From: Thalia democratica
Lineage: Eukaryota
DNA length: 64,000 nucleotides
Assembly (NCBI GenBank): GCA_965202585.1
Contig: OZ241829.1
Location: 66,774,001-66,838,000, forward strand
Reading direction: 5' to 3'
A program made the translations under genes and the position numbers. Below the pieces are notes generated by a model. That model was not told where the DNA came from, did not search any database, and was given only the letters and a program-made list of their open reading frames with translations. Below, one piece after another: positions 4,201-53,300 of the stretch. The stretch's first letter is position 1, and every line of letters starts with the position of its first letter.

Positions 4201-5030
4201 ATCTAGGTTGTTAATTAATACCCATAAAACTCATTTAAATTTGATAATAGTTTATATATTCGTCTTCTTCTGTTTAATAAAGTTCATGTTATAAAATGAG
4301 ATAGTAAATAAACAAAATGTAAATCTCAGCTAGGTTGTAAATCTAGGTTGTTAATTAATACCCATAAAACTCATTTAAATTTGATAATAGTTTATATATT
4401 CGTCTTCTTCTGTTTAATAAAGTTCATGTTATAAAATGAGATAGTAAATAAACAAAATGTAAATCTCAGCTAGGTTGTAAATCTAGGTTGTTAATAAATA
4501 CCCATAAAACTCATTCAAATTTGATAATAGTTTATATATTCGTCTTCTTTTGTATAATAGAATTCATGTTATAAAATGAGATAGTAAATAAACAAAATGT
4601 AAATCTCAGCTAGGTTGTAAATCTAGGTTGTTAATTAATACCCATAAAACTCATTTAAATTTGATAATAGTTTATATATTCGTCTTCTTCTGTTTAATAA
4701 AGTTCATGTTATAAAATGAGATAGTAAATAAACAAAATGTAAATCTCAGCTAGGTTGTAAATCTAGGTTGTTAATAAATACCCATAAAACTCATTCAAAT
4801 TTGATAATAGTTTATATATTCGTCTTCTTTTGTATAATAGAATTCATGTTATAAAATGAGATAGTAAATAAACAAAATGTAAATCTCAGCTAGGTTGTAA
4901 ATCTAGGTTGTTAATTAATACCCATAAAACTCATTTAAATTTGATAATAGTTTATATATTCGTCTTCTTCTGTTTAATAAAGTTCATGTTATAAAATGAG
5001 ATAGTAAATAAACAAAATGTAAATCTCAGC
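4201..5030 (+). repeat. Tandem array, 140-bp unit, ~5.9 copies, variant order A-A-B-A-B-A
   Basis: Units start at 4201, 4341, 4481, 4621, 4761 and 4901 (ATCTAGGTTGTTAAT...AAATCTCAGCTAGGTTGTAA). B units (4481, 4761) share diagnostic changes (TTAATAAATA, TCATTCAAAT, TTTTGTATAATAGAATTC). Confidence 0.97.
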
Positions 5031-6849
5031 GAACACTCAATCACACTGCAAATTTTATTTTAAGTTGAAAAAATATTTATTATTTTAAGCTGAAGTAGAG
5101 TCTAATGGAGTAGATTGAACTTGATAAGTTTCAAATTAAAACCTTGACTTTTGCAGCATGAGTAGTGAACAGCATTTGAACAAATCATTAAAGTATGATT
5201 ACCCTGGAAACAGATACTCGCTTTTTATTGGAGGATTGGACCCCGTTACGTAATTTTTTTATTATTTTACCTCCCTCTCTGCGCAAATAAGCAACCGCGC
5301 ATTTGATTAGCGGAACTTTATCAACTCTGCTAAGAGTTTTAGAAACTTTAGAAATACTTGAAGTCTTGTTGTATGTTAGCATGTAGTCTACTTCACACTC
5401 ATTGTATATAGCATCCAAATTGTTATCAATCATCTTTTTTTTAATAACTTCTGTAACTTTAGTAATAGTAGTTTTAGACGCGTATACTTCATTTCCCGTT
5501 TTTTCAGCTTTAATTTGATATTCGACGATCGCAATGAACTGTAGTGTCGAAATCGATTTTTTCTTTACGTTTGCAAATTTTTAGTAAAAATGATTTGATT
5601 GCTTAAGAAATTATTGTTTAAATATGCTTTCATAAACGTTATTGTCGTTGTCGCTTGACAATTCAGTAAGCATTTCACAAGCTTTTCTAGAAAGTTTTAA
5701 TGAATTAACATCCGTAAAATTATTATTTCTTTGTTCTGTAACTAGTTTTAACAAAGATGAACGCGTTTGCCTTTTCACTTTTTGGTTACAAACAATCATA
5801 TCTCGAAAATTTCTTAAGCATATGTTTGTTACTACGTTTGTACTAGATTCTTTACAAGAATCACCATAATACAAAAACACATTATTTATTCTGCTCATGA
5901 GATTTTTAAAATCATTCCACTGTTTTTCTAGTACCAAAAGGAAGCCATCAAAATTTACTACTTTCATTTTTTTCCATAACTGAAGATAGAAGATAATCTT
6001 GAATCGTATTTTTAAATTTTTGGCTGAAAACACCGTCATAATTAAATAGCATAGAGTGGCAAGACGCTAGATATATTTCAATAATATTGTCAAGTTCGGT
6101 ATTGCTGTTTTTAATCAACTCACTTAACTGAAGTTTACCTGGATTACCTCGCAAAGCGCATTTTTCTTCAGGAAATAGATTAAATTCTTCTAAACGGCTT
6201 ATTACGCCTAAACTAAGGGGTTTTATTAATGCTGACCTTTTAAAGTTTGCTGTTAAAAACAGTTGTTCGTGAAAAACTTCCTCCAGGAAGCCTTTGTTTA
6301 CTTGAGTAAACGACATCACGTTTTCGCAATTTTGGTATTTCTTTTTATTATTTTAACCGAAACAGTCAAAAACAAATGAACTTCAGCAAGTCTTTTAGAC
6401 AGCAGAATACTGTGTCTTTGAACTTTAACATCAATTATGTCAGTGACACCAATATTTCTAATTTTCTTCGCAATTTCAACTTCACTCGTAACGGGGTCCA
6501 ATCCTCCAATAAAAAGCGAGTATCTGTTTCCAGGGTAATCATACTTTAATGATTTGTTCAAATGCTGTTCACTACTCATGCTGCAAAAGTCAAGGTTTTA
6601 ATTTGAAACTTATCAAGTTCAATCTACTCCATTAGACTCTACTTCAGCTTAAAATAATAAATATTTTTTCAACTTAAAATAAAATTTGCAGTGTGATTGA
6701 GTGTTCGCTGAGATTTACATTTTGTTTATTTACTATCTCATTTTATAACATGAACTTTATTAAACAGAAGAAGACGAATATATAAACTATTATCAAATTT
6801 AAATGAGTTTTATGGGTATTAATTAACAACCTAGATTTACAACCTAGCT
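4888..6849. repeat. Pair of apparently identical 363-bp inverted repeats (arm 1 4888-5250, arm 2 6487-6849) around a 1.24-kb spacer
   Basis: The reverse complement of 6487-6849 reads the same as 4888-5250: last array unit, 5' leader and first 31 codons MSSEQ...GLDPVT (ATG at 5158 on +, 6579 on -). Confidence 0.95.
5251..6579 (-). pseudogene. N-terminal half of an RRM (CPSF6/7-like) - cullin (CUL3-like) chimeric gene, inverted
   Basis: KYDYPGNRYSLFIGGL...NIGVTDIIDVK...VNKGFL aligns by eye to the CPSF6 RRM region (VYTYTGKRIALYIGNL...SLGVNDILEIK...CNKQFL). Downstream WNDFKNLMSRINNVFLY...KACEMLTEL...VYESIF...YLRREGGK aligns to CUL3 repeats (WNDHQTAMVMIRDILMY...NACQMLMIL...VYEEDF...YLREQGK). Frameshifts near 6325 and 5970 (A7 run); in-frame TAA at 5611-5613 and 5581-5583; no introns. 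Confidence 0.88.
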
Positions 6850-6850
6850 A

Positions 6851-8104
6851 GTTAACGTAATCAGTTTGAAAGACAAATTGGACGAAATATTGCGCAAGAG
6901 CTTTTGCAATGATGCAATTTTAAGTAGAGTTGTTAATACAAAATATGAAAATCTAATCAAGAGCATGTCAACGTGTGCTTTGTTTTTACCAGTTTTAATT
7001 AATACGAAATTTAAAAAAGTTGTGAAGAAAAGAGTAGATGTCTACTTGCCTGAAACGTTTGAAAAAGCTCTTACTATTTTTAGTTTAATGAATAGAAACT
7101 ATGACTTTGAAGAAATTTTTGAGAAACATCTTCGCAAAAGATTGCTACATGACAAAACTTCTATCGAGCTTGAGAAAAAGCTTATAGAAAAATTTGAAGC
7201 TAATTGCAGTACAATCGCAACTAGGAAACTTAAGGGATTGCTGGAAGATTTTGAAGAATCTGCACTTGGCAAATAAGAAGTTATTATTTACAGCGACAAA
7301 GAGCAAAATATTGACCTATCTGCTACTGTGCTTAATTCATCGTTGTGGCCAAAACAATAAATTTTTTGCAAACCGACATCGCTAAAAAGCGTGTTAGACT
7401 CATTTTGCGTCTTCAAAAATTTTTATGCTCAAAAACATCCGGGAAGGAAATTAGAGTTATCAAGTGGTCGAGGAAAAGCGTAAGTCAGGTTTATTTTGGG
7501 TAGTGAAAAATCTGAAGGCAAGATTCTTCTAGTAAACAATTTGCAGATGGTTACGGTGCTGCTTTTCAATCAGCATAACAAAATGACTTGGAAGCAAATT
7601 GTCAACGAGAGTAAAATTCCATTAGAACTACTTAAAATCATTCTTTAATCCCTGACCCGACCCCTCGTGGTTAACAATGTCGAAGGACCGAATGTTCTAA
7701 AAAGCTTGCGTGGTACCAAACATCCGGCTGAAAACAACCTCTTTTTTGTAAATAGTCATTTCACCGTCAAATTAAAAATAGTCAAAATTCCAGTGGTTTT
7801 CCCAACATTCAACAAATTCAAAAAGGAGCAACAGTCAGAGGTAAAAAGAAGGAAAGAAGAGGAAATAGATTATGCAATGGTTTGCACTATGAGAGTCGAA
7901 AAGAAAATTGAATATCAGAAACTTGTTGTTGAAGTTATAACGAAGCTCGCTGAAAAGTTCAAACCGAGCTTAAATACTATCAAAGAGAGAATTGAGCATC
8001 TGATTGATAGAGGAAAAATTAGATGCGATTATAAAAACCGGTCAATTTTTTATTATGTGTCTGGTGAATATACATGGAAACCTCCTTATTACGTTTTTCA
8101 CTAA
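6851..8104 (+). pseudogene. C-terminal half of the same cullin (cullin homology domain and neddylation/WHB domain)
   Basis: One continuous frame: FEEIFEKHLRKRLL (CUL3 FERYYKQHLARRLL), VLNSSLWP, FYAQKHPGRKL, LQMVTVLLFN, RRKEEEIDYAMVCTMRVEKK...IKERIEHLIDRG...IFYYVS. Four in-frame TAA at 7274, 7358, 7481 and 7646. Confidence 0.92.
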
Positions 8105-9029
8105 TAGAATATTTTAGTTGATTTATAATTATGTTGTTGTATATGGTTTTTTTTTGTAATTTTGATTTTTGTATAAAATGAATTAATTGACGTTGTGTTG
8201 TCCTCAAAAGTTCTTTTAAATTTTTATATATGAGCCAGGTGTAGTTCTACTAATTATTAACTTATAAAACTATAAGTAATGAGTTAGAAAAAAAACAATT
8301 AATAATTTAAATCTAGAAGAGATTTTGAATATAACTAAAAGGTACGTTTTTAGTTTTCAACTTTTAATCTCATACTTTAAGATAAATATTTAAACAATTT
8401 CTTTATTTAATTTTATTTGTGTTTTCATTTAAAGTAAAAAAAAAGTAACCATTTAATTGCTTTATATCTTTACGTTAAGTTACTTTTTTCACTTTAACTT
8501 ATATAAAAGTCAAAAAGTTTAATGTTTATTTTTCTAAGTATGATTTTATCGTTACTTTTTAAATTAGGCTTTTTACTTTAATTACTTAATTTCTGTAGTA
8601 GTAATGTATTTGTTTACGTTTCATTTCACAAAATAGTATGAGCTGAAACGTTTAAAAACTGAACTTAAAAAAAAAAAATTCAACAGTTTAATACCAAATA
8701 ACTCTACAATTTTTGTTCTAAACATTTAACATTAACAGTCAATTTACACAAAATTCTTGTGAATATTTTCTGAGTAAAAAGCTTTTAAACCAGTTTTACT
8801 TTTCTATCATCTTCGCTAAAAATAGTTTAAAAATGTGTTAAACCATACTGTGTCACATTTGTAACAAAGTTCATGGTACTATTTTGAAATATAACTTATC
8901 AAAACCTTTAATTTAAGAAAATATATACTGTAAACCTTAAATTTCGTAGTCGGTTTAGTTCTTAACGTATAGTAAGCATATTTGTTTGGAAACATTTAGA
9001 ACTTAATGTTAAAAGAGGTAAAACAGTTA

Positions 9030-9660
9030 TAACAAACACAGATAACTATAAATATTTGGGAATAATTTTAGACAAAAATTTAAAATGGACACAACACGTA
9101 GAAGCTATAAAAACAAAATTACAAAAAAAAAATGGTTTATTATATAAAACAAGACATTTCTTAATTGAAAAAGCGTTAAATTTAATCTTTAATTCTTTAT
9201 TTATCTGCAATCTTAGATATGGCTTGTTGTGCTGGGGAAGGGCAAATAAAAAATATATAAATGATATCAGTGTTCTCATAAACAGAGCACTTAGATGCAT
9301 ACATTATAAGAAATATGATGATAGTGTAAGAGAATTAAAAACCCAGAAAAAACTATTAGATGTTGAAAGTCAGTATATATATAAAATAGGGCTGTTTATG
9401 TTTAAGTTTAACAATAACTTGTCACCAGATAATTTTAAAAAATACTATAAAAGTGTAGCAAATGTCCATAATTATCATACGAGGTCTTCAGAAACAAATT
9501 TTTTCCTACCTAGATTCAACAGCACATTAGGTCATAAATCGCTATCACAAAGAAGTTAGTTATGGATTAAGCTACCATTAAATCTAAAATATATAAGTTG
9601 TTTTGGAAAGTTCCAGGATGAACTTAAAAGTTGTCTTTTAAATAGTGATTCTCAAGGTCA
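9030..9660 (+). mobile_element. 5'-truncated non-LTR retrotransposon (CR1/L2-like), C-terminal part of RT ORF
   Basis: YKYLGIILDKNLKWTQHV...LRYGLLCWG...NVHNYHTRS...W.KLP are typical post-RT motifs of CR1/L2-group LINEs. Confidence 0.85.
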
Positions 9661-10869: not shown

Positions 10870-11885
10870 AACTATATTTCATGAGAAAGCTGATAATTTC
10901 ATGGACCGTTTGTCCTTTGCAACAGACAATTCTGACATCACTTCAACAATTTAAGAAAACAACGAAACAGTATAATCAAAATTTTTATGTTTACAACTTA
11001 GGTTTTCTTAAAAAAATACAAATAGCATCAAGTTTAATTAAATCAGAATGTCAAAACAACTTTTAATAATTTTTAATCTTTTTAAATTATAATTACTTGC
11101 ATAGTTAGGGTTGTTTACTAGGTGTTATGCAATAGCAGCTCATTTTGAAGTATTTATTACTATAATAGATTTAGTTTTGTTATTACTCATACGAAATTCA
11201 TCGATACTTTTTGGAATATGTTCCTTTATTCTTTTGCCAAATTGTCTTGAGGTCATCCCGACATAACTAGCTTCACAGAAGCAGTTAAACTGGTAAACTA
11301 CCATACTTTGTTTAAATTCTGCTATCGGATCTTTGCCCCCAGGTCTAAACATTGGTTTGGATACGAAAATAACGAACGGCTTTGCCGAATGATAAGTCCT
11401 ACTTACTAATTGACAAATATTTCTTTCTAAAACTCTTGAGTTCTTATTGACATAAGGTACTAAAATAATCAAGCATTTCTCCGACTCTGCTGGCTTTATT
11501 TAGTTTAAACTTTTAAGATGTAAATTTTATTAACAAGTTCTTGTGGATAGCTATTTTTATTTAGTATCAATTTTTTTTTTTTTTCATCAGCAAACAATTC
11601 TTTTGAACAGATTTTGTATGCTCGATGGCAGAGCGTTCTTATCAAATTTGTCTTTCTCTTCATGCTACAGAATAAATGAAAGTTTAAATAGTTCCCAGTA
11701 AAAGTTTTCTTCCTATAAACAGATGTCAAAAATTGGTTCCTTTGTCGTTTAACTAAAACGTCAAGAAAAGCCAATTCATCGTTATTTTCCTTTACTGATG
11801 TAAATTTTATTGTAGAATGTGTTTTGTTCAACACACTAAAGAGTTCATCAACCTCTTCCTCATCTTTTCCTGAAGCCAGCAGGGC
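10870..11885 (-). mobile_element. Penelope-like retroelement (Poseidon-type), 5'-truncated: RT thumb plus GIY-YIG endonuclease
   Basis: LAFLDVLV...TSVYRKKTFTGNYLNF (PLE RT C-terminus); VVYQFNCFCEASYVGMTSRQFGKRIKEH (GIY-YIG); continues degenerately to ...KPKLCKHKNFDYTVSLFS. Confidence 0.92.
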
Positions 11886-11904
11886 CGTAGAAATTCTTGA
11901 TTCC

Positions 11905-12430
11905 TTTAGTACTGCCTTATGTCAATAAGAGCTCAAGAGTTTTAGAAAGAAATATCTTTCAATTATTAAGTAGGACTTATCATTCAGCAAAGCCGATCGT
12001 TATTTTTGTATCAAAACTAATGTTTAGACCTTAGGCAAAGATCCGATAGCAGAATTTAAACAAAGTATGGTAGTTTACCAGTTTAACTGCTTCTGTGAAG
12101 CTAGTTATGACGGGATGACCTCAAGACAATTTGGCAAAATTACAAAGGAACATATTCCAAAAAGTATCGATGAAATTTTGTATGAGTAATAACAAAACTA
12201 AATCTATTATAGTAATAAATGCTTGATCTGCTATTGCAGAACACCTAGTAAATAACCTTGACTGTGCAAGTAATTATAATTTAAAACGATTTAAAATTAT
12301 TAAAATATGTTTTGACATTTCTGATTTAATTAAACATGAGGCTATTTGTATTTTGTTAAGAAAGCCTAAGTTCTGTAAGATTTTGACCATACTGTTTTGA
12401 CCATATTTCGTTGTTTTCTTAAATTGTTTT
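11905..12430 (+). mobile_element. Inverted partial copy of the 3' half of the adjacent Penelope-like element
   Basis: 11905-12430 is a diverged reverse complement of ~10945-11465 (GIY-YIG region and 3' end), arranged head-to-head with the main copy. Confidence 0.88.
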
Positions 12431-33160: not shown

Positions 33161-36100
33161 TCAAAAAGAAGTTGTATACATGTTCATCACATATGCAATT
33201 GAATCATTGAAAACAGCGGCGAAAGTCTGCAGAGTGTAAGCCTGGACTTTCTTTTGTCGTTAAATAAATTCGAGTTATAAAAATAAAAACAAGCAAACAA
33301 ACATTTTTCTTTCCCTTAAAACTTAATACTATCTAGATTAAATAGTTATTTTGAACAAATTATTAACTTCATATCTTCTACATAAATAACCAAACAAACG
33401 TTTTCTTTTCCTTTCATTCCCGTCCTGATGACGTCATATTCCCGCGGAACGAATCCGCGCGAACCCACAAAGTCTGCAATCGATTGCAGCGTGTCTGTTG
33501 CGTGCAAGAACCTGCGCGTGACTTGACCTCCAATGGGCAGTTTGAACTTAATCGTGCACGTCTGTGGAAAATTATTTGTCTGATTTGCATTTTCGTTTAA
33601 AATGTCTTGTGATGTCTGTTGGAAAGTATCCAGCTCTGACATCTCCTTTGAAAAGTTAAGAGAAAAAAACAAACAGATTTCTATCCTTTATGAACATTTA
33701 TAATGGTTAGATTAAAAGATGTATACTTGAAATGACTTCATACTTGTTTCAAGGAATATACAACGTCTAAGGTTTCGAACAATTAAAACATCTTCATGGT
33801 TTAATAGTTAAAGAAGTTTAAAACGTACCATAAATTTTAAATCTTATTAAGGGTGAGCAATAAAAAAGGTAAACAACGCGCAAGTGTTCCAAACTGTTAT
33901 CACCAAATACTTGCACTATTTTAATATAATGTAACATCTTCTTGAATTTATGTAATAATATTTCATATTACCCTGAAGATACTACCGATATTTACCCAAC
34001 TGTTGGGTTAAAAATGTTCTACGGTAAAAACGGATCTCAAGGTACTTAATTTTTTTATCCTTTCTACATTCTAAACATCAGTTTTAAACGATGAAAATTT
34101 ATATTGCACAAATGTTTGTTGAATAGTTTAAAAAAATGCTTAATATCGCTTGTACTCAACAAGATTAGCTCAATGTAATTTCATTGAGTTGGAAACAAAC
34201 AACCGTTTTTTCAAGAACAAAAGATGCAAATATCAAAAACAGTGATAAACAAACTTTCTCATCAGCTGACGGCTCAGCGGGAACCACGCGCTGAAGTCTT
34301 GAGATTTCTCCTGCCCTCACTTCCTCCTCCTTCTCCCTCGTCTTCTCCTTCTTCTCTTCTTCTTCCTTCCTTCTCGCCTCCTCCTTTCTCTTGCGCTCTT
34401 TCTCTTCGGCCTGTTAGAAAAATTAATCAGGTTCAGGTTGTTTTTAGATTTGAAGAGTGTTATTACGTTTTGGCTAGATAAAGTACAAGCCAAGTTTACG
34501 CAAGTGTGGTTATACCAGTTAGAAAAAAATAAAGCGAAGTATAAAAAGTAAACGTAAGTCTCTACGAAAGGTTTTGAAATTCATGAAAAAATGTTATGAG
34601 GAAAGATACAAATCCATAAAACAAATACGAATTTTGAACCTATAACAAAACATTGAAAATTAGAAATATTGTTAATAGTTTTCAACTGCTTTCTTTGAAA
34701 TTCAAGTCGTAACAAGTTAGACGATAATTTAGTTGAATCTAGGTAATTTTTATAACAGAAAATAAAAACCTTTGCTTTGTCAATTGCAAGTGACTTCTTG
34801 TATTCTATGTCCTGCTGTTTTCTTATTGCTGCATTTAGTAAAATTTGTTGCATTTTCACCTAAGTTTAAAGATGTTGTGTAAGAATATCTAATTTTTGAC
34901 AACTAAGTAATAAATAATCTCTGCTAGAGTTAATTTAAACTACCATTAAGAAAAACACTAGTAAAGCTAGGGCAAAGTACGGTACGCCAACTAAAAGCTT
35001 AGTTTGCGATTTTGAGCTTGGAAGTATATTAGTAAATCAAATAATAAAAAATATCAGATAAATGTTTTTTGCAAGTTTCTTTTAAAATAAGACTTTTAAA
35101 ATGAGTAACTTTTATGATACAATATTGCAATACTACGCAGCTTTCTAGATTTATTTAACGAGTTCTACTTCCAAAGTAATTCTCGAAGTAAATCTGACCA
35201 ACCGCCAAAGATATACTGCACACCTTGACACTAGCAACATTATTTATCTTATTTAGCAAAACTTTATAACAAATTAACCTCTTTAGCTATTTCATTGTTC
35301 TTGCTCACCTTCATAGTTGTTGACACTTTTGCTATAAAATCATTGACTTTTTCTGGGTCATGCATGCCTATAAACGATATATTTTCAATATAACACTATG
35401 CTTCTGACAGTATTTTTTTTATTTTAAAAATCAACAACGCTTTGTGCTACTCAGATGAAAAGTTCGCTTTGTAATTTAAAATCGTTGATCGCTAGCAAAT
35501 TTTTATTTTACCAACGTATACTTTTTATAAATGAAGATACATTAAATAACTGAAATCTTTTTGTCCCTACTACTTGTACTTTGAAATAAATTGTAAGCTA
35601 GTTAAACTAAGTTAGTGGCAGTTGTTTTCATAGCAAAAACAAACATTTAAAATTGAAACAATTTTATACTTTATGTACGACAATAACAACTAAAAAAATA
35701 TTACCTTTAATTTCTTCATGAAACCTGCAGTCTTTACCCTTGCCAGTCAGCAGCAGCAGCAAGGGATACTTATCAACTTCTGTGGTGCTTTCTATTGTGT
35801 GACACACATCTTTGCAGTGGTTCTCGCACAGAGCCATCAATCTAAAACAGGTTTAAAAGTAATTGAACTAAAGACTTTTTAGAAGAAAGCAAAAAATAGT
35901 GTTCAGTAAAAATTTTAGTTGATATTTTCAGTAAAGGTCAAAGAAAGTGTTGATTTGGATTTTGAACAAACATATCTTTGTTGTATAATTCTTATATATA
36001 TACAAAAAAAAGTTGAAATAAAAAAGTAAGGTGTACTTGAAACTCCACTAACAACGTATTTTTTTACGTTAGTGTTTAACAATATAAATTATTTATTACT

Positions 36101-46139: not shown

Positions 46140-47915
46140 AATTGTATATATACATATATATATATAAAATAAGGTTAATGTTTAAACTTAAACACTTTCA
46201 ACTGAGCCCACTTTTCTGCGTTTAATACGCGTCTTCAGCCAAGTTGTATTCAATGAAAAACAAACTTGTAAGTACAGCAATAAAATTATACAAAATTAGG
46301 TATTACGTAATAATAGAATAGATAGTTAATTTTTGACAAAATTATTAACAGAAATTTTAGATAAATTGTTTTCGATAATGTATGCAGCCAGTTTGTAATT
46401 CGTTTCTTTTGTTTAGAGATTCAGATTTTTTAACTTTTAAAATTTCGATTTTTTCCGCATTGCACAATTTACATCCGTTTTTTAAATTATACTTATTTTT
46501 CGTTCTTGTTAATATTTCCCACTAAATTTTAAAATTGACCTTGTAATTTTTTAGTTTCCAAATGTACTGCGATAATGTTGTCGTATTTTTATGTTTTTCG
46601 TGTTTGAAGCTGTACTTGTGCTTTGTGTAGCGATTCTTGAACGATAGTCCAGTCGAGCCGACATAAAACTTGTCTGATTTTCAGTTATGACTGTCGCTTT
46701 ATATATAATATTTTCCATTAGGCAACTTCCATTTACTGGGCATTCTTGTTTTTTGCAGTCACACATTCGCCTCTCTTTGTCCTGCGTGTCTAACATCTTT
46801 CGATTGTGTGCCATTATAAGTTGTTTCATGTTTGGCATGCAGGAATAGGACACTTTTAGTGTCTTCCTGTTAAAAACTTTACAATATGGATGGTCTTCAG
46901 TAAAGTTTTTGTCCACAATCTCTAGGAAGCGCTTCCCAACCCGTGTTGCCACACTTTTGCAGAATGGAGCATTGAAATATAAAATATTTTATCTCCTTCT
47001 TTTCTTGTTCTTACCCTTCTCGCTTTTGTGGCTATAGGCTAACTCGTGATCGTACCCACTTTCTCTTGTAGCTTCCTGGTATTGCTGGGTTGTTTCCTTA
47101 AAAATGCTTTGACTGCTAGAAATCTTATGGAGGCGGTTATTTACTGCGACCGGTATGTGTTTTAAAACATGCTCTGGGTGGTTTGACTTGCTATTCACAT
47201 AAACCATATGTGCATTTGGTTTTCTATACGCCTTATGGTTTTCATTTTGAAGATCTAAAGTTACATCTAAGAAGTCTGTTACAAACAGATTAGCTTCAAT
47301 AGTGACATCAAAACCAATGTTTTTAAAGACTTTTCTTAGATGTTTGACTTTTCTCTCCATATCTGGACCCGGTAGAATGTCCACCACTGCTAAACCATCG
47401 TCACGATATATACCAAAGTTACCATCTCTAAAGATTTTTTCCTTCTTCAATATATCTAAAATATATAGGCCAACCAGTTTGCAAATTTCTGCGCCATGAA
47501 AGCTTCCCATTGGTACATCAAAGCTGTTCTTGTTGTGCTTTTTCGACTATGGTTCACCCTCGTGGAACAGTACTGATTTGCAGCAATGTCTGATTAGCTC
47601 TTTTTCATTCTCCGTGATTTTAGTTAGGCCTGCAGCAAATTTGAAGGAGTTTTCCAAAATTGTTGCTGAGATGGCTGGATAAAAGCTCACTATATCAAAT
47701 TTGATAAACCTTGAAGTTGATTTATTGCTTAAGCTATTGAACCACTTCAATACCTCATAAGTATTTTTCCATTGTATTAAATTACTTTTTGATCTTATAA
47801 GATTGTTGATTTTATCTAAATTTGTTTTTGCAGGTTTGCCATTAAATGTTTTTGCCGGATTAATTATTCTACAACTTAGTTTATTTTGGAAGTTTGGTTT
47901 ATGATCTTTTAAGGC
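46140..47915 (-). mobile_element. Penelope-like retroelement (Neptune-type), 5'-truncated, frameshifted
   Basis: DHKPNF...CRIINPAK; KFDIVSFYPAI; PMGSFHGAEI...GIYRDDGL (RT); TDFLDVTLDL; KVSYSCMPNM...CDCKKQECPVNGSCLMENIIYKATV (Cys-rich linker and GIY-YIG); TA microsatellite at the 3' end (~46146-46166). Confidence 0.93.
46198..46238 (-). ncRNA. Candidate variant hammerhead motif in the Penelope 3' terminal region
   Basis: Minus strand CTGAAGA-C-GCGT(ATTAA)ACGC-A-GAAA-AGTGGGCTC-AGTTG; core and helix II present, helices I and III imperfect. Confidence 0.35.
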
Positions 47916-50388
47916 ATATATTTATACTGTTTGATACACAAGTACTGTTTACCAGCAAGACATTTAGACTCTGTTGTTTTTAATAAACTTGTAACGATTA
48001 TACTTTCTATATATAAAGTATTCTTATAACATTTTAATATCTTGTAAGAATATTTAGTTAAAATTATTTCAGATAGTTATCAAACTAAAAACCAAGTTTT
48101 TAAAGGTATCTGAAATATTAAGATTCTGTGTATTTTATAGATAAGTTTGAACAAAGGTTTTAAACAAATAATTCTACTCATTTAAGCTACAATTGCAAAT
48201 ATATTTTCTCTATTCAAATAATATAAAAGAAAACTGTTAGTCAAATAGAAATGCAATATTCCATATTGAATATTTGAATTTTTAGGTCAACTTGCAAAGC
48301 CATGGAATTTTGTTGCCGAAATTTTCCTATCACTAAAAATATAATAGAACATGTTGAAAAGACTAGCTTCTATAAAAACAGAAACCATAATGTTAAAGAA
48401 AAGTTGTCAGTGGCAAAGTTCAAGCTTTTTTAACCCACAAAAAACTGTTTTGAGTGCAAATCTATGTTTTGAAATTTCAAACATTATTATGCAGAGCAGT
48501 GATGCAATACAATTAAGTGTTACTTAAGGTTACGACGCAATTTAACAAGCAGTAAATTTAAGTTAAACAATGTTTGTTTTAATTTGTTTTCATTTTGTTA
48601 AAGTTGTTTTAAGAGCTAACGTTTTAGATATTGTTTGAGATTTTTTCATAGTTTTACCTTTTTATAGTTCAAAATTAATACCTTAAACTTAAAATATTTT
48701 GAAATAATAAGTACATTTTACTGTGTTTTTATCAATGTCAGAGAGAACAATCTTCTAAGCATAAGTCATATATAAACGTTGTTTAAATTTTAAGTTTTCA
48801 CTAATTTTTTATTTCTCTATAAAGTTTTTCAATAAAAGTCTTTAGAAGTAGGTATCTTTTAAATAAAATTGAATTATTTGTTTTTCAATTTAACCAAGCA
48901 TCTTTGAATGAAAATGTTAAGTTATCATAAAAAAAATTATATTTTTCTATTTAATGGAAAAAATTCACTTACAATGTTAAATTATCATTATTAGGTACAT
49001 CTTATTATTAAAATTAATCAATTTTTGATCTAATAAAAGCAATCAAAAATACAATAGAAAAATGTTTAATACACGAAAAGTTACTGTACATTTTTAATCG
49101 ACTAAAAATAAGAAAAAAATCTAGTTGCAATAAATATGCACAAAATTGCATTGCTAGCTTTTTTTAAGCTTATTCTCTCACTTCTTAAACTATTTTCTTT
49201 TGTTTACTACAGTGCGTGCTTTACAACTCTCTCATTTACAGCTTTAATTACGACAAAAATAAACTCTGGTAAGTATGACGTGAATGAACTTTTTACAACT
49301 TAATGAAAAAAGCTATTGTAAAACTAAGAGGTTTTTCTAATATTGTAAACAAAAAACAGTATGTGATTTGGTCAAAAATTAAAAATTAAACCCTTTGAGT
49401 TATAAAAATATTCGAAAATGGATTTTTAAAACACTTTTAGTTTATTAATTTTGTATTAAAAGTTTTCTCAAAGTTGTGACACATTGAAATCTTTTCAAAG
49501 TTTATACATACTTTTCTTCAAAATTAACTTATAAAACTATGTCATTTTTTACGTTGTTCTTTAAAAAGTATGAACCAAACTTTACTTTATATAAAAGATT
49601 TAGAATAAAACTTTTGCAAAATATTTTAATTAAAACAATAAACAATCGCTTGTTAATTCAATTTTTGTTAATTCAAATTTTTCATGGGTCACAAAGGAAA
49701 CCTGAAACCAATCAAAACATGATCTGTTAAAATATTTCTAAATTAAATAAGAATGAATTAGTTTTTTAAAATATTAGTTTAATGTCATTTAAAATTCTTT
49801 TTATTTTTCCTATAAAATTTAAGTTTTTCCTTTTATAACACTTTAAGATTTTTTTAACAAAAATGTTTAGATATATTTTTTTTTATTTGTAAAAATAAAA
49901 ATGTTTTTTAGAAAATAATGAATTTAGCCTTCTTATAAAAAAATCAAAATGATTAAAATAATAAAATAGTAAGAGTTATGTAGTAGTTTAAAAAAATTTA
50001 AGTTGTACTAAGAACATAAATACTGTAAAAGATATAAGTTTTTAGATGAATAATTTGTTTAGGGTTTTTTTTAATAACTTTTTTAGAAATGGAGTCAGAA
50101 AACAAAACATAAAGTAAACTTTTACATATACTTTGTACACAGTAAATCTAAGCAAAAAAAAGTTTATCTTTAAAAATGAGCTTTATTAGAGTGATCTTCT
50201 TTCAAGTTTAAAATTAATAAAAATAAATTTGTTAACAAACTTATTAAAACTAATTAGTATTGTGTAAACTATATATAATTAGAAATTAAATACTTAGGAA
50301 GTAGTTTATATAAAAATTTACAAGTTTCATTTTGGCTCACATCAAAGTAGTTATAACTTCTGCACATAGAAAAACAAACATCAAAACT

Positions 50389-53300
50389 TTATAGAAAATT
50401 ATCAAATTCTCCAGATTCCAAGCTCTCTTTGTTCTTCTTCCTCGAATATCTGAACCCGATCAGCTTGGTAAAGAAAACTTTCCTGTCAAACTCCTTGCTA
50501 AGATCGTAGCACCTGCGCTTCCTGAACTCCCCGCACAAAACCTCCTCTCTCTCCGCCACCCCCGAATCGAACACCACGTAGACCCCTTTCACCTTCCTCC
50601 TTAGCAACGAGCGCGTCCCGACGACGAACTCGTCCTTCCACGTAGCGTTGCGCCCCCTGGCGACGAACTCCTCGTAACTGCTCCTGCCGAAGGGTGAAAG
50701 GTACAAAACAAAGCGGGTTCCACCACCGATGGCGTCGTTGAGCAGCTCGGTGTTCCTGTCGAACTCGCCCCTTTTCAGCCACCCGCTGAAGAACACATGG
50801 GCGAACCGACCGCTAGATTTAAGGTTTCTCGCTAAACTTCCCGCCCTCCTCATATATTCTGTCGATTGGTCGCCGCTGGACACCAGTATGACGAGGCGGT
50901 CTTTGGCGGGATCCGTCGGCATCTTGAAGTAGAAATAAATAAGCCCTGTGTGAATTAAATGTGTTTTTAAGTTTAACTGTTGTCAGTTTTTTTAGAAAAA
51001 TGATAATGTATTAAGACAAAAAAAAACAATTTATAATCTATCAACTTTTTTTTATTCATTTATCTTAACGCAACAAACCTACAGTAACAAACATGATCAC
51101 AGCGCAAATTGAGTACAATAAAATGAGCAAAGTAGAATATTGAGATTCCTTCTGCTTTGCCTCTTCATCACTTTGATCATTTACTTTAATGTAAAAAAAA
51201 TAATCAGCATATTTATCAATAAGGGTATGACTTCAACAAAAAGAAACACGATAAATTTTTTAGTAGTGATATTTTTTTTTTTAATTTAAATTTTGTTATA
51301 TTAGTTTTTCTGAAATAAATGGGTAACAAACACGTAGGTAGTGTCCGAGTTATAAAGTTTATTTCGCATCGTTTTCCATTCACAGGGAAGTAGTGAAAGG
51401 TGATGAAGTACTGAATAGGCCACGCCGTCAAGCTTGCGTTTTCAAATTGCGGATCTCCCAGAGGATTCACGTTGAACACAAAACGTGTCTGAAACAATTA
51501 CTTTATTACAGTTGCAAAATTTCTATGACTTAATATTCATACAACTACTCGATACAGCCATGTGTGCTAGTACAAACCAAAGGTTTATACAGTGTTCTAA
51601 GTGACACAAAAGTCGTCTGGAATTTTTATAACAATAATTAGTGACGTCAGCAGGTTGAATTAAATTTATCTTATATTGGCTGTAATTATGTTTAAAATTT
51701 TTTATTAGTTATGTTAAACTGCAAAAAACTTTACAATATTAGACATAACTACAGTTAAGAGAGGTTCATGTTATATCAAACCCTAGATGGCGTCATAATG
51801 TATCGTCGTTTATACATTTGTATTATCAAATAACTAGTCTAACAGATATAAAGTTGTTAGATTAATTTTAAGTGTATTTGAATTTTTTTTTATAATGTTC
51901 ACCATTATTATTTTTTTATCTAGTAGAGTATGTTTGAGGTAGAAGTTAGTAGTTAATCTTTTATAATGCTGTTTTTTTTTTCTCGCTCTTTTACAAGCTA
52001 GTAAAAAATTAGAGTGTAATTTCAATAAAATTATATACAAACTTTTTTACTAAGTGATAAAAAAACTGTTCAGTTATAAAAAAAACAGGCTAAATACTAT
52101 ATTTAATCTTTTCCTTCATGTCTTAGACTAAATCAGAGGCTCACGGGCTAAACACGGCCCTCAAAGCCAAAATCTGCGGCCCGCATGGTATTTTATCTAA
52201 AAACATACATTTTTAAAGCCATAAAAATAAAAATAAATTAATAAAAACTACGCATTAGGCTCCTTATTCAGTAAATAGTTAACTTGTGCTTTATTATTGC
52301 GTACTTTATCTTATTTTTCGCTTAAAACAGTATTTTTATACTAATTATTACAACTATTTTAAAATTTTTACAGCCCTCAAAGACGTTTTTCTAAACAGTG
52401 CGGCTCACGAGCAATTTTTTTCCCACAAGTTACAAAAGGCTACCGACCGCTGGACTAAGTAAATCCTTTTTATTCTTGTTTAATTGAACTAACCTTTAAC
52501 CCTTTGTCGAATCTTTTTGGAAACGGGAAAAAGTAATAGGCCTTGTTACTGTCACTGAAAGTAGTCAACTGAACTATGAGACCTTTGAGATTGTCAGAAT
52601 CGTTTTGTGCGAGTTCTGTATTTGAGTTAAGTTAGTTTTTCACAAAATTATATCTTAGAAAAGATGCTTGTAAAAACTGTTTTAGTTTGAATAAAAATGT
52701 TTTTAAAAATAAGATGTTAGAGCTATTAAGATCGTAGTAAACAAAACAAATACATCGAAAAATTGCGTAGAAATTTGATTTATTTTAAACAAACTGTAAA
52801 TTAAATTGATTTAATTTAACTGTGAAAACATAAATATACCAAACTAAAAGGAATATAATGGTTACAAATTTATTGTAAAAAAAAAAAAAATTAAGTTAGT
52901 TTTACTATACAAAACTGCTGTTGAAAATAAATCAAGCTATAAGTAAACTGACCGACAGTGTAGTTAAGCTGTATGTACTCAACCATTTTTCCATTTTCAA
53001 TCGGCCTGACTAATTCTGCACTGCATCTATTGAAAGTTCTATCGAACCCTGTGTCATCTAAAACAAAATACTAAAGTAATACGTCTGTGTGTGACGATTT
53101 AAAAAATGTTTGCACTCAATGCAGACTTAGAACTCTAACAAACTGTTTTAACTAAATTTAAGTTATCTTATAAATTAAATATCTCAAGAAATTTCTTAAT
53201 TTATTCTACATATCCATTGTCAGTTTTTAGTAGACTTGCTTGTGATCAGCGTAAAAGTATAAAACATTCTTAAAGTAATAAATTTAATAAAATTTTGTTT

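Follow-up and report, generated by a model that had tools for sequence, protein, structure and literature searches.

An intronless gene that joins an RRM to a cullin is confirmed as real and so far undescribed. One copy lies at positions 5158–8104 of the window, the 64,000-nt stretch of DNA analysed here. With good confidence, the window copy is a decayed, rearranged copy of a genuine lineage-specific RRM-cullin gene. The intact gene encodes, at a similarly high level of confidence, a ~114-aa CPSF6/7-type RRM head that a flexible linker of ~55 aa connects to a complete cullin of CUL3 descent.

In the usual view, a cullin serves purely as a scaffold, depends on separate adaptor and receptor proteins and is activated by NEDD8. 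A cullin that is under selection, has its own RRM-type recognition domain at the adaptor end and lacks the NEDD8 lysine would represent a novel design for making or blocking a cullin ligase, and would directly and physically link the ubiquitin system to mRNA 3′-end factors. Literature searches turned up nothing relevant on the RRM-cullin architecture or on non-neddylatable lineage-specific cullins. The window itself yields a more modest result, a dead copy whose main value is as a dated case of a decaying gene and of an inversion with duplicated breakpoints.

Structure and decay of the window copy

The first-pass annotation had read two oppositely oriented parts of the window as one intronless RRM-linker-cullin gene, and the alignments bear this out. 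Re-oriented 5251–6849 joined to 6850–8104 aligns end to end, at 80% nucleotide identity, with two collinear metagenome copies, and a single 2,701-nt HSP connects the re-oriented sequence to the independent collinear contig L001. The minus strand of 5251–6579 starts with MSSEQ... and encodes the RRM, followed by N-terminal parts of the cullin (Pfam Cullin profile 67–176 and 199–297). The plus strand of 6848–8101 continues collinearly (profile 313–453, 469–488, 504–531 and 544–585) and ends in Cullin_Nedd8.

On the minus strand, the RRM head, recognized by its PDB matches to CPSF6/7, occupies 6238–6579 (approximately residues 1–114 in the numbering of the intact protein P0159; the low end is approximate). 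It is followed by the linker to the first cullin helices at approximately 6080–6237 (P0159 residues 107–161) and by the cullin N-terminal part at 5251–6079, equivalent to CUL3 residues ~17–330. The plus strand encodes the cullin C-terminal part at 6850–8104, which ends at a shared TAA stop (8102–8104). It includes the Cullin_Nedd8 (WHB) domain at 7856–8014, where the NEDD8-acceptor codon is AGA (Arg, 7892–7894), and a family-specific extension past the normal cullin end, GEYTWKPPYYVFH, at 8063–8101.

The inverted block, the 5′ 1.6 kb of the window copy, spans 5251–6849 and is bounded by perfect inverted repeats of 363 nt (4888–5250 and 6487–6849, 100% complementary). Directly 5′ of the gene is a 140-nt tandem array at 4201–5030 on the plus strand (5.9 copies by TRF, in two alternating variants). 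The left arm, also on the plus strand, contains codons 1–31 from the ATG at 5158, preceded by the 5′ flank and an array unit. It joins the inverted body without a gap, and reading stops there at TAA 5251–5253. The unique inverted segment, 5251–6486 on the minus strand, encodes codons 32 to ~443, with the remaining RRM, the linker, cullin repeats 1 and 2 and part of repeat 3. The right arm, 6487–6849 on the minus strand, contains codons 1–31 (6487–6579), the 5′ flank and one inverted array unit. An acceptor-like TTTTGCAG lies immediately upstream of its ATG.

Eight lesions interrupt the frame, an exact match to the earlier count of about six stops and two frameshifts. All six in-frame stops are TAA, located at 5611–5613 and 5581–5583 on the minus strand and at 7274, 7358, 7481 and 7646 on the plus strand. 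Both frameshifts are 1 nt long: a deletion near 6340 within the RRM head and an insertion near 5973 in the cullin N-terminal part. Relative to contigs L001 and L005, 26 nt are absent at the junction 6849/6850, the 5′ edge of the C-terminal part. Two in-frame indels are also present, one of them a 6-nt deletion near 6148 in the linker. A relative-rate test against the RRM-less cullin P0002 counted 67 window-specific and 47 L005-specific amino-acid changes (p = 0.075), which hints only weakly that the window branch decayed faster.

The breakpoint coincides with a TTACGTAA-type palindrome and shows 5-nt microhomology. Such a pattern would be expected from an inversion with a single staggered break or from template switching, and the palindrome and microhomology are likewise compatible with replication template switching. 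The inversion was probably late and not the cause of gene death, because the arms are identical yet the gene already has eight lesions.

It is possible, but on balance doubtful, that the inversion and its 363-nt duplication are an assembly or library artefact and that the pseudogene is collinear in the real genome. Inverted duplications can arise from chimeric long reads, the tandem array adjoins the left arm, and the arms are 100% identical despite 20% divergence of the gene from its relatives. However, a unique spacer of 1,236 nt separates the arms, which argues against a simple fold-back. The breakpoint is at a ATTACGTAAT palindrome that is also present in relatives, and it shows a 5-nt microhomology (TTACG) to RRM codons 30–31 together with the 26-nt loss. 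Palindrome, microhomology and loss are typical of break repair or template switching and thus speak against an artefact. An artefact would in any case leave the six stops and two frameshifts in place.

No second copy of the RRM-cullin gene was found by tblastn across the 64-kb window, and an Rfam search of the window returned no match. ORFs in the neighbourhood look retroelement-like by eye only and had no Pfam match.

Relatives and selection

The existence of an intact fusion in this or a related species had been raised as a possibility, and one is present on Tara Oceans contig L005. Its 871-aa ORF (P0159), which is known from this single low-coverage metagenome contig (L001 and L005 are both mosaic), encodes the RRM head, a low-confidence linker of ~55 aa and a complete cullin. 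Pfam detects Cullin (E 2.5e-100, 337.5 bits over profile 41–620) and Cullin_Nedd8. Contig L001 holds a second RRM-cullin copy with one frameshift, in which the RRM and the cullin N-terminus lie within one 341-aa frame (ORF1).

The intact RRM-cullin most likely comes from a related marine organism, a sister species, judging from sequence divergence. An unrelated gene in the window has a relative with 83% amino-acid identity in a Tara sample shared with the RRM-cullin relative (dS 0.55), and the dS of the RRM-cullin, 0.41, is comparable. Relatives of the intact unrelated ORF at 50392–50922 are metagenome sequences only. The flanks of the RRM-cullin are homologous outside the ORF.

No relative was detected in scans of JGI metagenome contigs or in IMG/VR scans queried with P0002 and P0159. 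When the 506-aa C-terminal ORF served as query in a word-based search for homologues, only the query itself and distant cullins were returned. ESM Atlas look-alikes were generic RRM clusters and ordinary cullin clusters, none of which combined both domains.

NG86 dN/dS is 0.38 for the window copy versus L001, 0.42 for the window copy versus L005 and 0.46 for L005 versus L001. Across the copies the range is 0.37–0.46, RRM included. The RRM alone gives 0.42–0.45 in the two comparisons with the window copy, and L005 and L001 differ there at only 3 sites, so that this pair is uninformative for the RRM. A control gene has a dN/dS of 0.18. By these values the copies diverged under purifying selection, although a dN/dS of ~0.4 indicates weak constraint relative to the control gene. 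They agree with the earlier proposal that the gene evolved for a long time as a functional gene.

RRM head

The first 87 aa were searched against 177,635 distinct PDB sequences, and the best matches were CPSF6 (E 0.0019) and CPSF7 (E 0.094). The alignment covers Y-x-Y-x-G-x-R/K...L-F/Y-I-G, before and in RNP2. A profile of four heads matched only CPSF6 (2.8e-5) and CPSF7 (3.1e-5) in PDB, with the next RRM protein at E > 0.6, and single-sequence searches again returned CPSF6 and CPSF7. The top Foldseek match of the RRM model, which is of moderate confidence (pLDDT 65), is the CFIm68 RRM (3p5t). Atlas look-alikes of the head are generic RRMs and not CPSF6/7 in particular; the predicted fold of the head is also that of an RRM. 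Search scores and the model match thus support CPSF6/7 RRMs as the nearest relatives of the head, as the first-pass annotation had proposed from the residues before RNP2 and the post-RRM NKxFL motif.

Pfam RRM_1 has no match in the window piece, L001 ORF1, P0157 or P0159, and the P0158 match scores 16.6 bits against a cut-off of 20.7. The head is therefore missed by standard Pfam annotation, and the architecture is invisible in domain databases. The head is also found on the non-cullin proteins P0157/P0160 and P0158. P0157 has a second, degenerate RRM copy at residues 182–234 and a tail without a Pfam match. Its occurrence on different bodies suggests that domains are being actively shuffled within the lineage.

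Cullin part

The window pieces score 57.7, 38.6 and 69.6 bits against Pfam Cullin (PF00888, cut-off 33.2) and are collinear. Cullin_Nedd8 (PF10557, cut-off 36.9) scores 44.8 bits in the window piece 7649–8101 and 45.6 in P0159. WHB scores are 45–48 bits in the RRM-cullins versus 84 in P0002. In phmmer searches of PDB, CUL3 ranks first with 226 bits, followed by CUL4A/B (160), CUL1 (105), CUL2 (89) and CUL5 (62). The cullin N-terminal part matches CUL3 only, with the alignment beginning at CUL3 residue ~17. CUL3 is also the top Foldseek match of the AF2 model (TM 0.83), whose pLDDT is >90 throughout the cullin, including the alpha/beta domain, and <50 for P0159 residues 107–161. The score ranking and the predicted fold support a CUL3-like cullin, the affinity that had been suggested for it.

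The NEDD8-acceptor position is Arg in all three RRM-cullins (VCTMR in the window copy, ICIMR in P0159 and MCIMR in P0001). Among 55 other cullins, 51 have Lys at this position, as does P0002. Helix H2, LSFEELYRNAY in human CUL3, is known from CUL3-BTB structures as the BTB-docking helix. In the RRM-cullins it reads NNILEIYLASCY versus the consensus LSFEELYRxAY, with only the Glu and Tyr of EELY kept. Helix H2 of P0002 reads NDLSEIYQACYY.

Proposed function

Tentatively, and with somewhat less than an even chance of being right, the most likely function of the intact protein is that of a self-targeting, neddylation-independent cullin scaffold; otherwise it would be a decoy. The RRM head would be tethered flexibly to the N-terminus of the cullin, the position where CUL3 normally docks BTB substrate adaptors, and would replace the adaptor. 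It would bring the putative RBX1-binding C-terminal domain to the partner of the head, which by analogy with CPSF6/7 may be NUDT21/CFIm25 or an RNP. With Arg in place of the NEDD8 lysine and most H2 consensus residues exchanged, the protein could act as a ligase only without neddylation and without BTB adaptors.

Less probably, the intact protein would act as a decoy or as a dominant-negative cullin, a lineage-specific inhibitor instead of a ligase. Lacking neddylation, it would sequester RBX1 or the partner of the head without catalysing ubiquitylation. Cullins with a Lys-to-Arg change are classically inactive or dominant-negative, which favours a decoy. So do the change of the acceptor Lys to Arg and of the preceding Arg to Cys in all three copies, the low score of the WHB domain (only 45–48 bits, compared with 84 in P0002) and the relaxed constraint (dN/dS ~0.4). 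On the other side, the whole 750-aa scaffold is kept, including an alpha/beta domain modelled at pLDDT >90, and pure sequestering would need less. Lysines also directly follow the acceptor site (RVKKK).

A broader role for the head is a speculative and rather improbable extension of the self-targeting scaffold. The ~114-aa head would be a portable targeting module of the lineage, placed on several effector bodies, and would bring ubiquitin- or SUMO-pathway enzymes to the CFIm/3′-end-processing machinery or to particular RNPs. The bodies that carry the head here are a CUL3-derived, non-neddylatable cullin and an RRM-repeat protein. If this were true, the RRM-cullin would be the first cullin ligase to dispense with adaptors and to have its substrate receptor built into the scaffold.

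Origin of the gene

An origin from a giant virus, as an endogenised Nucleocytoviricota cullin-like gene and no host CUL3 paralogue, is very improbable and was rejected. The gene is intronless, AT-rich and known only from short metagenome contigs, and among its Atlas look-alikes, two clusters (ranks 37 and 49) consist of Nucleocytoviricota cullin-like proteins. Against this, the IMG/VR scans with P0002 and P0159 gave no relative, CUL3 is by far the best match, all copies have the acceptor-like motif upstream of the ATG, and the window neighbourhood contains a spliced host-type UBX exon (Pfam).

A processed (retro-)pseudogene was also considered and rejected. Homology with L005 extends past the ORF by 165 nt on the 5′ side and by at least 200 nt on the 3′ side, a poly(A) tract is absent, and all family members, including P0002, are intronless.

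Two further readings have practically no probability and were rejected. Chance adjacency of unrelated RRM and cullin pseudogene fragments, suggested by the opposite strands of the window parts and the missing Pfam match of the RRM, is contradicted by a junction common to three independent assemblies. It is excluded by the occurrence of the RRM and cullin N-terminus in one ORF in L001 (341 aa) and L005 (871 aa) and by the single HSP with an independent collinear contig, in line with the earlier view that the parts belong together. Retained coding through TAA as a sense codon, e.g., for Glu, would fit internal stops that are TAA in six of six cases, four of them aligned with Glu codons of relatives, but the ORF ends at a homologous TAA in the window copy, L001 and L005, internal TAA is absent from the intact L005 ORF, one substitution turns GAA into TAA in a genome of 26% GC, and the gene is also broken by two frameshifts, the 26-nt loss and the inversion.

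Comparison with known systems

In the staggered-break model for Drosophila inversions, inverted duplications are left at the breakpoints. The window resembles such inversions in carrying a 363-nt breakpoint segment at both ends, in opposite orientations, around a block that is simply inverted. The differences are the persisting 100% identity of the arms and the location of one breakpoint at a short palindrome with microhomology.

The RRM head shares with the CPSF6 and CPSF7 RRMs the pre-RNP2 Y-x-Y-x-G, the RNP2 L-F/Y-I-G, the IGV-D-I motif and the post-RRM NK-FL motif. Its RNP1-like SKxYAEV corresponds to SKGYAEV of CPSF7, and the predicted fold is likewise beta-alpha-beta-beta-alpha-beta with an extra N-terminal strand. 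However, identity is ~25%, and after residue ~114 the linker and cullin follow, without a proline-rich or C-terminal RS/RE-like region. The cullin in place of these regions points to a borrowed domain, not a CPSF6/7 orthologue. In P0157/P0160 and P0158, the N-terminal ~114 residues share 60% identity with the head of the RRM-cullin (E 8e-39), the ATG context is as in the RRM-cullins, and the only PDB matches are CPSF7 and CPSF6, whereas the body is not a cullin.

The RRM-cullin has the full architecture of CUL3, with three cullin repeats, an alpha/beta domain and WHB/Cullin_Nedd8. It differs from CUL3 in its ~28% identity, the added N-terminal head and linker, the change of the neddylation motif from IVRIMK to (I/M/V)C(I/T)MR, with Lys replaced by Arg, and a C-terminal extension of 13–17 aa with a WKP..YVF core common to the window copy, P0159 and P0001. 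Closest to the cullin part is P0002, a cullin without an RRM encoded on Tara Oceans contig L002, with 45–47% identity; all other cullins among 1.84 billion proteins are at most 35% identical. P0002 is likewise intronless, AT-rich and CUL3-like. Unlike the RRM-cullins, it is 751 aa in length, lacks the RRM head, and keeps VRIMK and the canonical ...YKYLA end. By these sequence features, the fusion seems to have arisen from a parental type like P0002.

Results

Three copies document an RRM-cullin gene: an intact ORF, a near-intact ORF, and a pseudogene, which is the copy at 5158–8104 of the window. The sequence around this copy has 26% GC and is eukaryotic. A repeat search identified a perfect inverted repeat of 363 nt with arms at 4888–5250 and 6487–6849 and a 1,236-nt spacer. 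Directly upstream of the gene and abutting its 5′ flank is a tandem array (4201–5030; 5.9 copies of a 140-nt unit, 96% matches), in which two sequence variants alternate and from which the inversion took one unit along. Both repeat arms contain a single array unit, some 130 nt of the 5′ flank, and codons 1–31 of an ORF beginning MSSEQHLNKSLKYDYPGNRYSLFIGGLDPVT. The ORF continues on the minus strand from 6579 to 5251, then on the plus strand from 6850 to a TAA at 8102–8104. Minus-strand pieces match positions 67–176 and 199–297 of the Pfam Cullin profile, and plus-strand pieces match positions 313–453, 469–488, 504–531, and 544–585, followed by Cullin_Nedd8. The strict profile order bears out the re-orientation and joining made in the first-pass annotation.

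When 1.84 billion cluster representatives were searched with phmmer, the piece at 6848–7273 had close matches only in P0001 (53% identity) and P0002 (47%); every other cullin was ≤36% identical. P0001 lies on a 2.7-kb metagenome contig, L001, along which the whole gene is collinear. A 341-aa ORF encodes the RRM head, linker, and cullin N-terminus in one frame, and after one 1-nt frameshift a 506-aa ORF covers the remainder. When re-oriented, the window sequence aligns to L001 in one 2,701-nt HSP at 80% identity, unbroken across the inversion junction. Cluster look-up found P0159, whose 871-aa ORF on Tara Oceans contig L005 (PRJEB4352) is uninterrupted and has Pfam matches to Cullin (2.5e-100) and Cullin_Nedd8 (7.7e-12). 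The RRM-cullin junction is shared by three independent assemblies, so the fusion is neither an assembly chimera nor a chance juxtaposition; it was correctly read as a real gene.

Lesions were called by aligning the window copy to a collinear relative, and the earlier estimate (~6 stops, 2 frameshifts) proved exact. The frameshifts are single-nucleotide changes, a deletion near 6340 and an insertion near 5973. Two further losses, 6 nt near 6148 and 3 nt near 5409, keep the frame, and 26 nt are missing precisely where 6849 meets 6850. Each of the six disabling stops is a TAA, two on the minus strand (5611–5613 and 5581–5583) and four on the plus strand (7274, 7358, 7481, and 7646). The corresponding codons of the relatives all encode amino acids (GAA in three cases, GAG, AAT/AAA, and GCG/GCA). 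Half of the stops differ from L005 by a one-step GAA to TAA change, as the strong AT bias would lead one to expect. The window copy is a dead pseudogene.

With U for the 5′ flank, A for codons 1–31, B for the unique inverted stretch (codons 32 to ~443), C for the rest of the cullin on the plus strand, and primes for inverted parts, its layout is array-U-A, then B′ A′ U′ unit′, then C. This matches the expected product of an inversion with one staggered break and fill-in of the 363-nt overlap on both sides; the same layout would result from template switching during replication. The breakpoint region in L001 and L005 holds the palindrome ATTACGTAAT. ACGTAAT occurs at both window junctions. TTACG is common to the left junction and RRM codons 30–31, and the rearranged copy lacks 26 nt. 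The arms do not differ at any of 363 nt despite eight disabling lesions in the gene, and therefore the inversion is probably recent and not what inactivated the gene. Alternatively, gene conversion held the arms identical, or the inversion is an artefact of the reads or the assembly.

The RRM head was not detected by Pfam in the window piece or its relatives, so that of the domains expected by the first-pass annotation Pfam returned Cullin and Cullin_Nedd8 and missed the RRM. Among solved structures in PDB, the head matched only CPSF6 and CPSF7. E-values were 0.0019 and 0.094, respectively, for the window piece, 0.0011 and 0.0063 for L001 ORF1 (beside CUL3 matches), and 2.8e-5 and 3.1e-5 for a four-sequence head profile, with the next RRM protein at E > 0.6. 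The profile alignment spans the pre-RNP2 motif, RNP2, IGV-D-I, an RNP1-like SK-YAEV, and the post-domain NK-FL. An AF2 model of residues 1–125 (mean pLDDT 65, core 70–84) has an RRM fold with an extra N-terminal strand. Foldseek ranked the CFIm68 RRM first and CPSF7 seventh with weak E-values (4e-3), and Atlas look-alikes were generic RRMs. The proposed grouping of the head with CPSF6/7 is based on the PDB ranking.

A region-restricted search with head residues 1–110 found the same CPSF6/7-like head on proteins that have no cullin: P0157 (L003, 807–2069) and P0160 (L007, 806–2068), both 420 aa, and P0158 (L004, 32–610; 192 aa). The P0157 and P0159 heads are 60% identical over 114 residues (E 8e-39). 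P0157 has CPSF6/CPSF7-type PDB matches (E 0.0019 and 0.011) and a second, degenerate RRM copy at 182–234, as well as a tail that matches no Pfam family. In every head-bearing gene, a pyrimidine-rich tract ending in AG lies 1 nt before the ATG (TTTTGCAG, CTTTCTAG, TTATTTTAG; window 6580–6600, minus strand; L001 55–72; L005 150–168; L003 ~790–806; L004 ~15–31). It looks like a candidate 3′ splice or trans-splice/spliced-leader acceptor.

By the Nei-Gojobori method, dN/dS was 0.37–0.46 for the whole gene and 0.42–0.45 for RRM codons of the window against L001 or L005. Whole-gene values were dN 0.171, dS 0.453–0.458, and dN/dS 0.37–0.38 for window and L001; 0.172, 0.412, and 0.42 for window and L005; and 0.035, 0.077, and 0.46 for L005 and L001, a pair that differs at only 3 RRM sites and so is uninformative on RRM selection. 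These codon comparisons show purifying selection on the RRM-cullin. L005 and L001 are 99–100% identical in codons 1–620 and only 82–91% in codons 621–871 (dS 0.24, dN/dS 0.49). The mosaic points to at least two recombining paralogues or haplotypes, or else to a chimeric assembly.

Homology between L005 and the window extends outside the ORF on both sides, by 165 nt at the 5′ end and by 200 nt or more at the 3′ end, and the homologous flanks of the window copy have no poly(A) tract; a recent retrocopy is therefore ruled out. An intact, unrelated 177-aa ORF at 50392–50922 (minus strand) served as control. It is GC-richer than its surroundings, matches no Pfam family, and has relatives (57–83% identical) only in marine or other metagenomes. 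The closest (83% aa, 80% nt including flanks), on contig L006, is from the same Tara sample as L005 (dN 0.10, dS 0.55, dN/dS 0.18), and its divergence is on par with that of the RRM-cullin. On the simplest reading, L005 derives from a sister species and is a possible orthologue of the window locus. With P0002 as outgroup, private amino-acid changes number 67 in the window lineage and 47 in L005 (p = 0.075). The window copy was probably functional through most of its history, as first proposed.

Elsewhere in the window, 33349–33687 (minus strand) is an exon that encodes a partial UBX domain (21.9 bits against Pfam UBX, cut-off 21). ORFs at 8966–9556 (plus), 11143–11921 (minus), and 46554–47921 (minus) resemble retroelement remains by eye only (RT tail motifs, a GIY-YIG-like stretch). 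They have no Pfam RT match, the sole match being a weak one to Pox_D5 (11143–11499, 22.2 bits).

Discussion

The cullin is CUL3-like, as annotated at first pass. Its C-terminal 506 aa score 226 bits against CUL3, 160 against CUL4, 105 against CUL1, 89 against CUL2, and 62 against CUL5, and the N-terminal part matches CUL3 only, from residue ~17. The full-length AF2 model (mean pLDDT 82.6, pTM 0.70) superposes best on CUL3 (TM 0.83). Its pLDDT is >90 almost throughout the cullin, <50 at residues 107–161, and 50–64 for the RRM in this alignment.

RRM-cullins combine this architecture with a flexible tether, NEDD8-lysine loss, and a divergent H2. The head would sit at the scaffold's receptor end. 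The most likely function, put forward tentatively, is that of a self-targeting cullin-RBX1 scaffold that would work independently of BTB proteins and NEDD8 and be directed at a partner of the CPSF6/7-type RRM, for which NUDT21/CFIm25 or an RNP would be candidates. Next comes a non-catalytic decoy or trap, which we consider somewhat less likely. No paper describing the architecture was found in the literature, nor does it occur in any Atlas cluster among the look-alikes, in agreement with the first-pass annotation, which knew of no description of it; it is invisible to Pfam-based annotation.

The neddylation motif IVRIMK of cullins is ICIMR, MCIMR, or VCTMR in RRM-cullins, in a column where 51 of 55 other cullins and P0002 have Lys. 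Helix H2, which from CUL3-BTB structures we take to be the BTB-docking helix, reads NNILEIYLASCY versus the consensus LSFEELYRxAY. A C-terminal extension with a conserved WKP..YVF core runs 13–17 aa past the normal cullin end. Because all three changes are common to the intact, near-intact, and pseudogene copies, they are family traits and not decay. In contrast, P0002, an RRM-less, intronless cullin of 751 aa on Tara Oceans contig L002, keeps VRIMK and the canonical ...YLA end and looks like the parental type.
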